The notes under the pieces: generated by a model
Databases searched by the model: none
The model's input: only the letters and a program-made list of their open reading frames with translations
Told to the model about the DNA's origin: nothing
Shown here: piece after piece, positions 48,528 to 57,109 of the stretch
Numbering within the stretch: the first letter of the stretch is position 1
Layout: each line of letters starts with the position of its first letter
NCBI GenBank assembly: GCA_965603825.1
Contig: CBFDEM010000035.1
Coordinates: 310,001 to 374,000, forward strand
Length of the DNA stretch: 64,000 nucleotides
Reading direction: 5' to 3'
DNA from: Blepharisma stoltei ATCC 30299
Taxonomy: Eukaryota; Protista; Ciliophora
Program-made: the position numbers and the translations under genes

Positions 48528-49585
48528 AAATGGATTAAGAGAAAATTTAGATAATTTAATATTATCAAGCTAATGTAGAAATAAAGACTTATTATTTAAT
48601 TATGATAAAAAAATATATATAAAATAAGCTTAAGAAATTCAACATAATTATAGATAGGATTGGAAAATTACTCTTCATGTGCTTATAGCTACAAGAAAAT
48701 TTAGGCATCTTCAAATAGAACTACTAGTTTTTGTAAATAAGATGAATGTCCTGATATAAAAAAAGAAAGAAATATCAGTAAAAACGCCGTAAAAATTGAC
48801 TTATATTGAATTAAAATAATTAAAGATCTCCCCTTAATTGTCTTTGCTTAGTACACTATCGACCAGAGCCACCTGCTTGCCTCAAGAAAATTCACATTAT
48901 ATTTGGAGCAGTGGACTCTAAGTATAAAGCTTGGGCTATGACCCTAAGTATCTCGGCAGATCAATAAGCTCTTATGTCATTTCACTATAAGATGATGTGG
49001 TTACCGGTTAGCGGTGCTTCTTCAGCTCGCAACGAGGAGCTGTGGTACATAGGGAAATTAACCGTACTCTCCGTAAAGGTAGAGATATAGCTGTTGCCAA
49101 AAAACCATCTGAATTGCTCATTAAATTAAATAAGCTGACCCTCAAGATCTGCACAACCAATACTGTCGATCTACGCAGGCTAAGGGTTAGAATTAAAGAT
49201 TTCGAACCTTTATTTTAGCTATAAAATAATTTTTGTAACCACAAAGGAGCGTCGCCGTCAATGGACATATTTAGTCTAAGCATTATTAATTAATTCACTG
49301 ATTTCAGAGTTCATCAATATGAATCAAATATTAATTATCATTGATTTACCAGATAATTTTTAACCTAACACTATTAGTTTAAACAGCATTAATTTATTCA
49401 CTTTTACGTATACTTTGCCCAAAAAAAAGCCTTAACAAAACTAGTTCCAATCCTATTGTCTGAGGGTTCGGTTTCTAATCTTTTATCTATAAAGCAAGTT
49501 TCTTAATATAAATTATAATTGAGACCTCAAATCTTGTTTAATTAGCTATTTTAGATATATTAATTAATTAATTATTAGCCATGAG

Positions 49586-50713
49586 CTATATACAAGCATC
49601 TAGTGAGTCAACTTCAACCCTTCCTTCTTCCATTTTCTTTTTCTTCAAATCAAATTTAAAGCAAGAAACTGTATCGATGCCAAATAAGACTCCGTAAAGG
49701 CAGCTATCGCACTGCTTTGCGTGAATAAAGCCATATTCCTCACCTAGCTTAATGTCTCCAATTTTATTCCAGTTGTACTCGTTTCCGATTTCACTTTCCA
49801 TGACTTTCCCATCTATCTCGATTAGATAAACTCTTAAATTAAAAGTAGCCAGCAGTTTAAGTCTGCATTCGGTAACGCTGACGAAAGGAAGTTCTGAGTA
49901 ACTTTCAATTTTCCTATCAAACTTATATAGTTTTTTGAAAAAAAATCCGCAGATCAAGATATTTTCTTGGAAAACAAGACAGGAGCAACCAAAAGACGGG
50001 ACTGGAATTGGAGTCAGTCTAATCCAGTGATTAGTTGCTAAGTCAAATTTATAAGCAATATCCAGTATTTGGAGTTCAAACATCCCACCAAAAATGAAAA
50101 TGCAATTTTGATAGTAAACTCCAACACACCATGAGGCGTTAGGCCCATTTGGCAGCCTTCTTTTGATACTAAGCGTTTTTAGATCAAATATATAAGCTTT
50201 TGCAGATGAAAACTCCCAACATCCAAAAGAAAAAAGCTCTCAGTTTGGAAGTTGGACAAGACAGGCTTTATCAAAAGACTCTGGAACTTTTATTTCAGCC
50301 TGACTTAGCCTAGAGTTCTTTATGTCATAAACCATCACACCAGTCTTGCTTGGCGCTCCGCAAGTAGAATACATGAACTTGGACTCGAAATTTAACTGTT
50401 CAGCAAAAATCTTAAGGCTGGTTTTAATAGAGTTCCAAGCGTCAATGTATTTTGAATAAGCAGTCATGAATTCAGAGCTGATTTCACTTAAAAATTTGCG
50501 TTCTTCAGGAGATATTTCGATAAGTGAGATATTCTCAAACTCTTTTTCAAGACTGATTCTTGTTAGTTCATAATTTGATAGTTCACCTGACAAATATTTT
50601 TTCTGTTGCTCTTGAAGATATTTTTCAAGTGAGGATAACTCCAATATCTTTTTATTTAACTCCTGGGTTAGTATTTTGCTTCTTTTTTGTGCACTTCTCT
50701 TGATAGGTTCCAT
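49586..50713 (-). CDS. Coiled-coil + kelch-like protein
   Basis: CLVQLPNW(TGA)ELFSFG, YYQNCIFIFGG, YKFDLATNHWIRL, CSCLVF..ILICGF; one frame. Confidence 0.87.
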
Positions 50714-50908
50714 GTTTTAATATTCATAACTTATGGATGAATTAGACCAATTTATGTTAACAAGCATTATTTTATTCTTAAAATGATTAGTTATTATTAA
50801 ATAAAACAGAGCTCGAAGACCTAGAAAAAAGAAGAATTCTACAGTTATGACTAAACTGATTACAGTAATTCATTTTGATGATATGCTCAAGAAGTTTATT
50901 AGAAGTAA

Positions 50909-52132
50909 TTAATCAATTTTAAATATTCTATTGGTAGTATATTGCCTCTTTATTTCTATTTCTTCCAATTTTTGCTTATTAAGATCAAATTTATAGCATC
51001 AAGTATCCCTCAAATCGTATAAAATATTATACACAGCACCATTACAATGCTTTGCGTACCCATAGCGATAATCACCCGTTGTAGCAAACATCCCAATTTT
51101 ATGTCATTTAAAATCATCTTCTCATTCACTTTCAGCAATTTTCCCACCAACCTCAAATAAATAAGCTCTTGAATATCCCGCACTTAGAAGCTTCATCCTG
51201 CACTCTTTTACAAGGACTTCTGGTATCTCTGAATAGCTCTCAATATCCAAATCAAGTTTATATATCTTATTGAGAGAAAAGCCACAAACCAACAGTTTTC
51301 CGTTAAAAGGTACAATAGAGCACCCAAAAGATGATTTTGGCAGCTGAGACAATCTGGTTCAGTGGTTTTTCCTGAGATCGAACCTATTTACAAAATCCAA
51401 TCCTAGAGTTCTATAAGAGCTGGAAAATATATAAACAGAGTTATTATAGTAGGCACCTCCTGCTCATAAGGCTTGAGGGCCAGAAGGAAGTATTCTTTTT
51501 AGACTCAGTGTATTAAGGTCTATAATAGCGCAAGCTCCAGAAGTGCGATCTCAGGTTCCATAGCAGAAGAGCTCAGAATTTGGGAGCTGGATTGTGCAGA
51601 GGCTTCGATATGGTTCTGGAGAAGCTTGCTTTAATTGATGGGTGTCTATATCATAGTAAAATAGGCATACCTTATTGTCTACTTGAAAATTCACATAAAG
51701 GTATTTTGAAGATAAGTCTAGTTTCTCGTTTAAAAAATTCAATTTTTGATAAATCCTTTCTCGGCTGCTAAGGTAGGTGTTGTAGGCTATGGCAACGTTT
51801 TGATTTGAATCACATATAAATTTCAGCTGCTCATGACTTTCGTTTAGCAAAGTTCCCTCAAGCTTGGTTTCAATTGATTTTGTTGATATCTTGAAGTTTT
51901 GGACTTCCCCAAGAAAGTAATCTTTGGATATATTTTCAAGCATCTCTTCTAGCAATACAACTTCTTTTACAGTATTTCTCTTTTCTATTCAATAAAAAAG
52001 GAATTTAAAAAGAAAATAAAAAGATTGATCTATGAAGTCATTAATGGAAATATGAATTTATTGTATCTTTTCAACAAGTTTTTCGTTCAGCATGCTTCCA
52101 GAATCCTCTATACTCCTTTTGATGGTTTCCAT
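50909..52132 (-). CDS. Coiled-coil + kelch-like protein, tandem paralog of 49586-50713, interrupted by a 96-bp TA-bounded insertion
   Basis: METIKRS..EKI[insert]KEVVLLEEML aligns with paralog MEPIKRS..KKILELSSLEKYL; CTIQLPNSELFCYG, RFDLRKNHW(TGA), IESYSE.P.V.V.ECR.KLL; TAA 50909-50911. Confidence 0.8.
51968..52065. mobile_element. IES-like element (96 bp counting one TA), TA direct repeats, weak inverted ends
   Basis: TA at 51968-69 and 52064-65; ends TACAGTATTT / TACAATAAAT (reverse complement); ~20% GC; carries an in-frame TAA; removal leaving one TA restores gap-free alignment to the paralog. Confidence 0.75.
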
Positions 52133-52339
52133 AATATTATCGAGTCCTTCTATGCGCTTATTTTCTAATTAAATAAGCATTTTTCCTGCATCATGAAATT
52201 ATAATTATTTTATTTTAATCGACTTTTCGTAATCCTTGAAAAGACAACGCAAAATAGCAGTTTATAACTGTTCTTTTTTATATTATTATCAATTGTAGCT
52301 AAACTATGAAGAAACGCAGCTTTTCTTATAATAATAAAA

Positions 52340-55300
52340 ATGCTAGCTTGGCTAATTCTCTTGACCCAAATCTCTAATGTTTTCTGCCTTTGTCAACTTG
52401 ATTGTGTAAGTTTAAGCCTTGAATTATGCTCTAAATGCATTGAAGCGCAAATGCTAACGAGGAAAGAATATTCTTCCAAAATTTGTAACTTATGGTCTCA
52501 AAAAGAATGTTCTGTATCTGAAGGATTTATTATTTCAACCAGGGAAAAATACCTTTGAATCAATTCATCTTATCATGATCAAGTTATTATCAGCTCTATA
52601 AATGAATTCTTCTGATCCAGTATTTTAGTGAAGTTTTCAGACGAAAGAAATATAACTTTAGAGAAAATATGCCAAACTGAAAATCAAAATTTCCAGCATT
52701 TTGGGTTCAAATTTAAAGATAAGATGAGAGAAAATTTGATTTATATTTGAGCAATTGGCTCATTTAAAGAGGATTTTCAAGGTTTTGTATCAGTCCAAAT
52801 AATAAATGAATCTAAATCTTATTCATTAACAGAAGCTCAACGTTTGCCAATGCCAGAAGTGAAAAGCATTGAGTGTTCTCAGTCTAATGCACAATGCCCT
52901 CCATGGTTTTGGTCAGAAATCTTACCTTGAGAAACTAAAGGAAGATTGCTTCAAAATTGCTATGATGCAACTTGCAATATCTGTCCTTCAAGTGACAGCA
53001 AAACTTGAGGGGACTGCTCTGACTGTGGAACAACTTTATTTTTATATCAAGGTTTGTGCTGGACTTTCTGCCCGTCAGGAACAGTTAAAGACACCGAATA
53101 TAATACGTGCAATAAGAAAGACGTTTACTCTCTTGACTTAAGCTTATACGACGTCATATCAAGCAACCCAGCAGGGATGACACTTGCAGCAGATTATAAT
53201 TGCCCTATCCCTTATCCTGTTCTCAACCGGGGCTATTTCTTTGAAATTTGCTCTCGCATGTCTTCTGATAATTTTATCATGCCTTACTTCTTTTCAGTTT
53301 CTGGCTGGATTTTTGTGGTGGATTATCAAAATACCTGAAACGAAATATTGCATTGGAATTTAAACTATGTCAATATAAATAACAAATATCTGGAATTATA
53401 TGATAAAGCTATTGAGCCAAATCCTTTTACCCTCAATGAGTGAAACTTCTTTTACCTTTCTCAATCAACAGATTGGACTTATGTGTATTTTTCAGTATCA
53501 ATGAATGGAGGCTCCACAACAACAGCTCAAGAGTCAATCAATCTTAATGTGATTGACAATGCTAAAACTCTATATGTTGGAGCTCCATCTATGAGCGGAA
53601 GCGGGTATGGATTTCATGGATACCTGCACAAACTTCAAATTTATACTGATTACCAGTCAAATGGCGCTGGAAATGATTATTACCTAAGTAGCTGCTCAGG
53701 CAGCTGCTCAGCTTGTCCGTCAGAAATGATATGTCCCAGCATTCACTGTATTTCTACTCAATATGAATACTTTGATGGCTGCCAGTCATGTGAGGCTTGT
53801 GAAACCAGCTGTGTCAGAGCAAGCGACTGCAACTTATGTGTGGACTATTGCGATTCGTGCAGTTCTTTTTCTTTGTGCACTTCGTGCCAGGCCTATTATT
53901 TTCTTGGCCCATCGTCTAAAAGTTGCCATTCTGGAGGATGCCCTTCAGGCTCTTATGATAATGGAAATTATCAATGCAAGATTGACTGGACAGTGATTGA
54001 AGGAAGGATACCTTGCTTCAGCTTAATTCTCAACAAAATTCAAAGCAATTTTAAAGACACTACTTATAACACAAACACCCTAGCTGGAGCCACTACTGAT
54101 TTTTATCCAAAATATGATGAGTATGACCCTTACCCTTCCAAAGGTCGAGGCTACTACTTTAATGGCCACTCATTAATGCAGGTCACTTCGTTTATGTTTA
54201 ACGCTGAATTCAGCTTTTCAGCTTGAATTTATCTGCCTACTTCCACTAGCGGAATTATTTTCGCAAAGCAGATTAACGACAGCACTTTTACAAAATTAAT
54301 GGCTTTTGAAATAAATAGCAGCAATAAGCTCCAGCTAAGTTTATATCTAACTATGAGTAAGACTGGAAAGGTACTGATAGGAGAATCAAAGCAGCTTGTG
54401 TATGATTCTCAATGATACAATCTTGCAGTCTGTGTATCTTATGCAGCTCCATACTCTCAAATAGCTTTTTCTATTGCAGGAACAACCATGAGTGTTGACT
54501 ATTATGAAATTTCTTTATTGGGGTTATTTTTGGATTATAATAGTGGCTATACTGCTACCATTGGAGCATCTCAGTCAACTAAAGGCTATGGGAATTTTAT
54601 AAAGGCGTTTATATACAGCATAAAAATATGGAATTTCGTAATGGACCCTTGAAATTATGACCATTTCTTAGCTAGCTGCGGGTACTATCCTCAAGCCGCT
54701 GACAGCTGTTTATCAACTCAGCCAATTGAGAAGTATTATGACGGAAACTCATGGCAAACTTGTAAGCCAAATTGCACCACAAAAGGTTGCGTCAAGTCAG
54801 ATACTCAATGCAACTTATGCGAGTTTGAGAATTGCTACCTATGTGATGATTGGACTGGATGCAGTACCTATTGTGACTCAAGCTGCGCTTCCTGCAATGG
54901 CACAAGTTATAAGGATTGCATAACATGCGCCAATTCTACTCGTGTTTTAGCTTACCCTGGACAATGCTACTGCACATCAAGCCAGTATTTGATTTCTGAG
55001 GTACCTTATTCTTGTGGAGACTGTTATAGTGCTTGCAGCACATGTGTTGGACCTAACTATAATGACTGTCTAAGTTGTAGCGGCCAAAGCATTACACTTG
55101 CTGGCTCTCCTGGATTCTGTTCATGCAACTCTACTCAATATATCAAAACTAAAAGTCCTTTGGAGTGCGCTGATTGTGATTCTAGCTGTCTTACCTGCTC
55201 TAGGAGTGGCAAGTATAATTGTCTGTCATGCTCATCTGGATTTGTATTAGAAAAAGATGGATCATGCACTTGTGGAGAAGGGAAAACCTTTTATAATGGT

Positions 55301-57109
55301 TACTGCACAGATTGTACTGATGAGAGATGCAGCAATTGCACAAGTAGTCCAGATATCTGTCTCTCATGCTTTTCACCATTTGTTATTGGTGGACGTGGCT
55401 GTGTTTGTCCCGCTGGGACCAAAGAAGAAAATGAAACTTGTATTGATAACATTCTTTACGTGAATGAGTCTTATTCAGATAATACTTTCTATCTAATCTT
55501 TAGTGAAAATCTGAATGAAACTTTAAGCACAGCAGACATTTCTATTACTGTTCTTGCTGATATACAAGTTACAGTCACTTTTGAAGTCAAAACTGTTTCA
55601 AAATACGATTATTATAAAATCCCTGTGGAATTTACTCCTACAAATGTAAATGGAGCAGTAACTTTACAGCTCTTTATTAGTAAAATAGTATATGGGGTGT
55701 CGAATTCTATTATTGAACAAAGGCTGTTTAACCATAGCAATGCCACTATTACTGGACAGCCAAAAAGTAGTGAGCAAATTGCAAACGAAGAAATTGCTGC
55801 AGTCTTACCAACCTCTACTCAAAAATCCTTAACTTCAACGATTGCGTTTTATGGCGTTGTTCAGTATCTTTGAACCCAAAAATCCGCAACTTTATGAATA
55901 TATGTGAATATGGTTCAGATTATTGCCTTTGCTCCTCTAATGAATATTGATATTCCTTCTGATATATATGATATGCTAAAGGGCTATATTTCTTATAAGT
56001 CTATCCCAAACCTTGGAGTATGGATTTATGAAAGCCGTCATATTGGGCCTGAACCAATAAATAAATTTTATAAATACGGGTATAAATCAGGGCTTTTTGT
56101 TATTGCTGCAGGACATATGGTATGAATCGCTCTAATGTTTTTTGCTCTTTGGGGGATCTTGCTTTTGCTTTATTTATGTATCCCAGTTGCAAAGGTTAGG
56201 AATGTATTAAGTACTAAAGTTTTATCGAATTTTCAGTATTCTTGGCTAATTAAGCTTTGACTGCAAATTTATATATTAACTATAGCAGGCGCAGTGATTG
56301 GGATAAATAATCCTGATGCTAGTCAATCTGACTATGTGGCTGACTGCACTTTTTCGTGGCTTGTATTTCTTTTGTCCTGAGTCATTAATGGATTAATGAC
56401 TTGGTTCATTTGGAAAAATAAAGTCATCATTGAGTCTGGAGATGAAAATTTCATTAAAAAATATAGTTCATTACTGGAAGATTTTCACTGTAAAAAAGGT
56501 TTTTTAAGCATGTGCTATTATCCATGGTTTCTGCTTAGAAGGAGCTTATATGCACTAATACTATACAATCTCGCTGATTTTCCTGCTTTGCAATCAGTAT
56601 TGAATATCATTTTAACTCTTATTACAATCTTTTATATGATCAAATATAAGCCTTATAAAAGTGGCTTAAATAACCAAGTTGAAATAGCTGCAGAATTTGT
56701 AGTCCTCATAGTCTTCATATTTTTAACCCCATTTATTGATACAGATTTATCAGTGTCTGCTAGAGAAGCTTTTCAATCCATTATTCTGCTATCAATGATC
56801 ACATTTATTTTATACAGCTATGCTATTTTAGTTTGCCAATATTATGTGAAAATCAAGGTAAAGCTGAGCAAAAGAAAAGAGCTTAAAGTAGCTCAGGAAA
56901 CAGGGATTGTTGTTCCGACTAATTTATCGGACTTAATCAATTCTAATAATGGAGAGGAATGCAATAAATTAGACACTCTAAACACCACTCCAAGAGAAGA
57001 TAGTATTGGAAAGAAAGCTCCAATTAGCACACCTGACGTATCAATTATATATCAAAAAAGGCTAGCAAGCGAAAGTGCCTTATTTGATGAGCCTTCTGTT
57101 CATGAATAA
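52340..57109 (+). CDS. Large Cys-rich surface protein: furin-like Cys repeats, two LamG/ConA-like domains, C-terminal multi-pass TM region; ~1589 aa
   Basis: Track ORFs at 52340, 53054, 53483, 54989, 55904 and 56396 share one frame via TGA. Signal peptide; CxxC..CxxC repeats; duplicated PYP...RGY.F / FS.S.WI units; TM block with SLLEDF..YYPWFLLRRSLY..YKPYK. Confidence 0.87.

Follow-up and report, generated by a model that had tools for sequence, protein, structure and literature searches.

A TA-bounded 96-nt insert in a kelch-like gene of Blepharisma stoltei ATCC 30299, possibly a relic IES that is no longer excised

The window analysed here, a stretch of 64,000 nt, is somatic (MAC) DNA of Blepharisma stoltei ATCC 30299 (contig 35, positions 310001-374000) with a GC content of 33%. 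The MAC genome of B. stoltei was assembled from MAC-enriched HiFi reads; its code reads UGA as Trp and its introns are 15-16 nt long (PMC9942806). Accordingly, when TGA is treated as a sense codon, the long ORFs of the window add up to 18.8 instead of 10.7 thousand codons, while their number barely increases. Whole-genome searches used the MAC assembly (41.46 Mb, 64 contigs) as the reference.

Two kelch-like genes are arranged in tandem on the minus strand of the window, and one of them is interrupted close to its ancestral start by an AT-rich segment. The elements of this gene pair are as follows.

49586-50713, minus strand: the uninterrupted tandem paralog (375 aa, identical to the public model P0002), which served as the collinearity reference
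50909-51943, minus strand: the ORF from which the interrupted paralog is expressed (344 codons and a stop, identical to the public model P0001)
51968-51969, minus strand: downstream copy of the TA direct repeat, seen in the sequence and in the joint of an insert-free contig from another DNA run (X12), which has a 2-nt ambiguity
51970-52065, minus strand: the AT-rich insert with one TA copy counted, defined by the sequence and by the empty-site contig of X12
51991-51989, minus strand: in-frame TGA within the insert, read as Trp in this code
52058-52060, minus strand: in-frame TAA (codon 25) that ends the frame begun at the ATG at 52132
52064-52065, minus strand: upstream copy of the TA direct repeat, seen in the sequence
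52064-52132, minus strand: 23 ancestral N-terminal codons (MET...VEKI), which match the paralog and have no RNA cover

The TA repeat makes two sets of insert coordinates, 51970-52065 and 51968-52063, equally valid. Divergently from the interrupted gene, 52340-57106 on the plus strand is occupied by a cysteine-rich ORF of ~1,590 codons with a signal-peptide-like start; RNA contigs lie on this ORF only from ~52481.

A previous reading of the window, made from the sequence alone, described a 96-nt AT-rich insert (~20% GC) flanked by TA on both sides and carrying an in-frame TAA, in the kelch-like gene that starts at 52132 on the minus strand. This description was borne out. At 19.8%, the GC content of the insert is below that of the intergenic DNA nearby (24-25%), of the remaining coding sequence (35%) and of the upstream codons (37%). 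In the ancestral frame the insert follows codon 23 and precedes codon 24. Past it the frame resumes as KEVVLLEEML and stays free of stops down to 50909, the next in-frame Met being at 51943-51941; removal of the 96 nt yields VEKI directly followed by KEVV.

The insert is a single copy sequence, as its sole match in the MAC genome (DNA search, E<=10) is itself. A short-word blastn search for relatives in the window and 21 paralog loci returned only low-complexity T-rich words, and a repeat search for a palindrome or hairpin in the insert gave A/T-run pairs alone. T runs, which are prone to slippage, are abundant. The ends of the insert begin with TACA(A/G)TA, which we take to recall TA-duplicating Tc1/mariner/Pogo elements and MITEs. 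The imperfect inverted ends, which the sequence-only reading had noted, are not distinguishable from chance: they match at 7 of 10 positions, and 6% of the TA..TA pairs spaced 96 nt apart in the window equal that.

The assignment of both genes to the kelch-like group relies on a Kelch_1 motif in the paralog (33.4 bits against the Pfam cut-off of 20.1), on PF24681 in the precomputed annotation of P0001 and on 39% identity between the two genes over 346 aa. The two flanks of the insert were compared with the paralog one by one and were never joined into a spliced model. The downstream piece aligns with the paralog at E = 7e-20, its own residue 2 corresponding to paralog residue 25, so exactly 23 residues are required upstream. 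The 23-codon piece is too short for a BLASTP alignment and was scored by an ungapped identity count combined with a shuffle test: 10 of its 23 residues are identical to paralog residues 1-23 without gaps, and only 3 of 100,000 shuffles were as good. Removal of the insert thus restores a gene whose flanks are collinear with paralog residues 1-23 and 24 onward, and the colinearity with the neighbouring gene that had been proposed earlier holds on both sides.

Elsewhere in the genome, other paralogs have the same M-x-(P)IKR-x-RS start and no insert there, and no insert was found at the equivalent codon at the N-termini of the more distant C2-cluster paralogs. Taken together, the collinear flanks and the shared N-terminal motif indicate that the gene originally started with the 23 upstream codons and that the 96 nt are an insertion. 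In five paralogs on contigs 3 and 53 (L004, L005, L007, L009 and L010) the start takes the basic form M-x-(P)IKR-K/N-RS. This basic N-terminal motif looks like a nuclear-localisation signal, and the truncated product of the interrupted gene would be devoid of it.

Searches for homologous proteins were limited to the genes of the window in what they returned. A 145-aa piece retrieved nothing and P0001 as a query retrieved only itself, while an exhaustive comparison of the downstream piece with 1.84 billion representative proteins found only P0001 and P0002, both of them genes of the window and both recorded in NCBI/UniRef on a contig of 1,026,051 nt. The 90% clusters of P0001 and P0002 have one member each. 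Since no ortholog from another strain or species was found in these searches, the insert could not be dated from outside.

Thirteen runs contain the stretch according to a check of sampled words, and all of them bear the same organism label. Seven DNA runs from two studies have all sampled words; they are flagged as possible sources of the assembly. The four RNA-like runs each have 0.68-0.70 of the words, and the DNA run X12 has 0.22. Contigs of X7 and X12 (DNA) and of X8 and X11 (RNA) were aligned to window positions 49400-53000. All read evidence consists of Logan contigs, which show presence but not absence or exact ends, rare variants being dropped from them.

X8 and X11 behave as RNA should, with gene bodies covered and intergenic DNA not covered. 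On the interrupted gene the RNA contigs extend from 50894 to the following limit, with 0 differences from the window.

51960/51961, minus strand: position at which the RNA contigs of X11 and X8 end on the 5' side, 17-18 nt upstream of Met 51943

This limit lies 9-10 nt downstream of the insert. Neither the insert nor the upstream codons have RNA cover in X8 and X11 (depth 0 over 52062-52424), and the contigs of these runs contain no splice joint over the insert. The share of sampled words in the RNA-like runs fits cover of 50894-51961 alone. The RNA contig of the paralog ends 8 nt inside the paralog's own ATG, which indicates that contigs fall slightly short of true 5' ends. Most probably, then, the transcript of the interrupted gene starts inside the final part of the insert or right after it, the exact start being beyond what contigs can place. 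The public model agrees: P0001 (NCBI/UniRef, 344 aa, 100% identical) starts at residue 9 of the downstream piece, which is Met 51943, so the RNA-informed annotation likewise starts the gene behind the insert.

N-terminal truncation with a start at Met ~51943, a possibility raised by the sequence-only reading, fits the RNA contigs as well as the public model. The remaining 344 codons are intact and have an RNA depth similar to that of the paralog. In both insert-bearing alleles known at this site (see below) the ancestral ATG runs into TAA. The expressed protein, which starts at Met 51943, lacks ancestral residues 1-31 and with them the basic IKRS motif. In ATCC 30299 the AT-rich insert is located directly upstream of the beginning of RNA cover, and may act as the upstream control region of the gene.

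In X7, which represents ATCC-like DNA, the locus is identical to the window. A single contig of 2,222 nt runs through the insert at a depth of ~103, equal to that of the flanks; among the contigs, from which rare variants are dropped, there is no insert-free form and no joint. X12 differs from the window at ~4% of positions upstream of the insert (37/908), so this run represents another strain. Most likely it is HT-IV, the sole other B. stoltei strain sequenced in the same study (PMC9942806).

Between common flanks X12 has two short contigs. The empty form is a 100-nt contig with a depth of 55.6 (~25%) that lacks exactly 96 nt. Its joint connects 51967 with 52064 with a 2-nt ambiguity, which is TA, and one TA is left. 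The breakpoints drawn earlier at the TA pair from the window sequence thus recur exactly in another strain, 96 nt apart. The major form is a 137-nt contig with a depth of 168.9 (~75%) that skips from 51955 to 52025 with 10 letters in between. These letters resemble 52016-52024, so we read the major form as an insert-bearing allele from which the following stretch was deleted.

51956-52015, minus strand: stretch of ~60 nt missing in the X12 major form, with approximate breakpoints

Of the missing stretch, 46 nt belong to the insert and 12 nt to the coding sequence, with the TA between them; it therefore extends across the right boundary of the insert. The depths of the two forms, 55.6 and 168.9, add up to about the flank depth of 217. 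Since the empty form holds the 12 coding nt that are absent from the deletion form, it can not be derived from the latter, and the X12 strain must have two alleles here. The site is thus polymorphic within the species, where it occurs with the full insert, as an exact empty site and as a derivative with a deletion of ~60 bp.

The second allele or strain departs from the window by 8% within the kelch gene (18/225 at 51211-51435, in RNA contigs) and by 4% upstream of it (the DNA contig over 52093-53000). The sharing of the insert by two haplotypes that are 4-8% apart implies that it is old. Over 49400-51925 no X12 DNA contig has an identity above 90%, i.e., the locus is unusually divergent between the strains.

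Other irregularities were observed in the X7 contigs. At 50254-50249, in the paralog, a 1,471-nt contig contains ~558 extra letters with AAGTTG (6 nt) on both sides; this segment has the appearance of a true IES confined to the germline and bounded by a repeat other than TA. Contigs also run into unlike sequence at 49432, 50024, 50788 and 50889, where the junction bases are not obviously TA; either additional IES junctions or artefacts of the graph may account for these places.

What is known about the IESs of this species provides a frame for interpreting the insert. B. stoltei has ~40,000 of them, about three quarters TA-bound and ~70% intragenic; those of 65-115 bp number ~10,800 and are for the most part not repetitive (PMC9942856). 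The lengths of short IESs have peaks at 65, 72, 82, 92, 101 and 110, although many IESs are off the peaks, and the mean GC content of IESs is 33.3% (PMC9942856). The peaks are thought to mirror geometric limits of the excisase. The insert, 96 nt long, has a length that belongs to the 65-115 range and falls into a trough, the nearest peaks being 92 and 101, and its GC content of 19.8% is well under the IES mean. It is not limited to the germline, being present at full depth in ATCC-like somatic DNA and, by the sampled words, in all seven such DNA runs. Precise TA-to-TA removal leaving one TA is seen in the X12 DNA contig, as it would be for an excision product and a germline allele alike. A MITE or another multicopy relic is not indicated, given the one match in the MAC genome (the insert itself) and inverted ends at chance level.

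With a probability of about 0.5, we consider the insert to be an old IES relic which ATCC 30299 no longer excises. It is TA-bound, intragenic, short, non-repetitive and old, and such a unique relic within a coding sequence favours an IES origin, since decay of a 96-bp segment during the time when it was excised is easier to explain than its constant presence in expressed DNA. The insert would then be a decayed germline IES, left by a transposon that duplicated its TA target, and the genome editing of ATCC 30299 would have ceased to remove it. One conceivable cause is that its length has drifted off the helical-phase classes preferred by the PiggyBac-type excisase; another is that a copy in the parental macronucleus protects it from excision in later generations. 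In either case the first 23 codons would have become dead upstream DNA, and the AT-rich insert would now lie directly upstream of the apparent transcription start. The sequence-only reading had likewise proposed an IES escaping excision. The discrete TA..TA insert at the DNA level agrees with that proposal; ongoing escape from excision in ATCC 30299 does not emerge from the data, as ATCC-like DNA contains the whole insert and no contig there is free of it.

A rival account, which we hold to be a real though tentative possibility, is a plain germline insertion polymorphism: a fragment of a TA-targeting element or filler DNA would have entered one haplotype lineage and never come under programmed elimination. 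The insert would then be ordinary MAC-destined DNA and the empty site of the other strain a surviving ancestral allele. The full presence of the insert in ATCC-like DNA, with no joint, speaks for such an allele, and the X12 strain requires two germline alleles anyway. Also consistent with it are the length off the IES peaks, the GC content far under the IES mean and a terminal inverted repeat at chance level, and the gene tolerates the insert because the downstream Met is used. On the other hand, a unique 96-bp relic without relatives in the MAC is unlike a recent transposon insertion, an exact TA duplication together with a size of 65-115 bp defines the commonest class of Blepharisma IESs, and the presence of the insert in two haplotypes 4-8% apart makes it old. 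The X12 empty site itself could be either an ordinary ancestral germline allele or an excision product.

A more specific scenario has the same germline IES in both strains: the other (mating-type) strain would excise it precisely, and ATCC 30299 would retain it heritably in the macronucleus, through a change of length or maternal protection, so that the retained IES provides the upstream sequence, or the promoter, for a kelch protein that has become shorter. We regard this scenario in its entirety as unlikely.

The insert could in principle be an unusually long spliceosomal intron, a reading that we find very improbable. To evaluate it, all frame-preserving GT/GC/AT..AG/AC pairs were enumerated. 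The earlier statement that the insert has no GT..AG ends is right for the boundaries supported by homology and fails 10 nt upstream, where GT at 52075 and AG at 51980, likewise separated by 96 nt, form a pair whose use would leave the frame open. Use of this pair, however, would put RNTV in place of VEKI, which matches NKKI of the paralog. Neither RNA run has a joint, RNA depth is zero on the supposed first exon and the RNA-informed public model starts at Met 51943. The insert-free form is seen in DNA, with TA boundaries rather than GT/AG. In addition, 97% of Blepharisma introns are 15-16 nt long, against 96 nt here, and splicing efficiency drops with length (PMC9942806). We therefore reject an intron on account of the DNA-level empty site with TA/TA boundaries, the missing RNA joint and the uncovered upstream exon; the previous view that the insert is not an intron is upheld by the absence of a joint in the RNA contigs and by the exact insert-free DNA form in X12.

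Finally, although assemblers can collapse heterogeneous somatic DNA (PMC9942856), we give next to no credence to an assembly artefact or germline contamination, in which a minority of IES-containing reads would have been taken into the somatic assembly, as all sampled words occur in seven DNA runs from two studies (possibly sources of the assembly and so not fully independent), and a single X7 contig passes through the insert at ~103 depth, the same as its flanks, with no insert-free contig beside it.

If the insert is a retained IES, it provides a concrete and easily assayed locus, where a single PCR amplicon would have three allele sizes. Such a locus could be used to probe whether retention is inherited through the maternal macronucleus in Blepharisma, as in Paramecium, and whether off-phase lengths escape the excisase. 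It also shows that a retained insert can shift the start of a gene without killing it. Should the scenario of one IES in both strains with retention in ATCC 30299 be true, no earlier case would exist among early-branching ciliates (Heterotrichea) in which the retention of an IES in one strain has rewired the start of a gene. The contribution of this one locus is modest, since cryptic IESs and excision that is partial or fails have been described for this genome before (PMC9942856). It is also known that IESs can be retained or excised only in part, that cryptic IESs exist and that strains differ in IES retention; what the present locus adds is three allele states at one site together with evidence for a shifted gene start.

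In Paramecium, IES retention can be maternally inherited and strain-specific IES+ macronuclear alleles occur, a copy in the parental macronucleus being able to protect an IES from excision. To our knowledge, maternally inherited or strain-specific IES retention has not been described in heterotrichs. The B. stoltei locus resembles the Paramecium cases in that the macronuclei of two lines differ by an IES-like segment, kept in one and missing in the other, and in that the gene product is affected. It differs from them in that the data here are the alleles of two strains alone, whereas inheritance, dependence on small RNAs and a common germline allele are features of Paramecium. Variability of IES retention as such is known (PMC6771405).

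With Tc1/mariner/Pogo insertions and MITEs the insert shares the TA target-site duplication. BogoMITE is ~390 bp long and has TAA/TTA repeats (PMC9942856); unlike it and other MITEs, the insert is 96 bp long and single copy in the MAC genome, and its ends do not form a significant terminal inverted repeat.

Closer parallels are found among the IESs of Blepharisma itself. Its MAC genome contains 10,048 cryptic IESs, segments that are excised in a minority of reads and have a median retention of 95% (PMC9942856, SI). Like these segments (PMC9942856), the insert is part of the MAC assembly, is TA-bound, falls into the same size range and has an insert-free counterpart. Unlike them, it has its insert-free form in the other strain only, at ~25% depth in contig data, and unlike typical cryptic IESs it is an insertion relative to the paralogs. 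True B. stoltei IESs have a MAC retention of <=0.02 (PMC9942856), in contrast to the apparently full depth of the insert in the somatic assembly, and typical short ones differ from it in length (96 bp being between the peaks at 92 and 101) and in GC content (33% against 20%). In its overall structure the insert is nevertheless like the short periodic TA-bound IESs of B. stoltei (PMC9942856): it has TA at both ends, is intragenic, non-repetitive and of a size within 65-115 bp, and its precise removal restores the ancestral frame.
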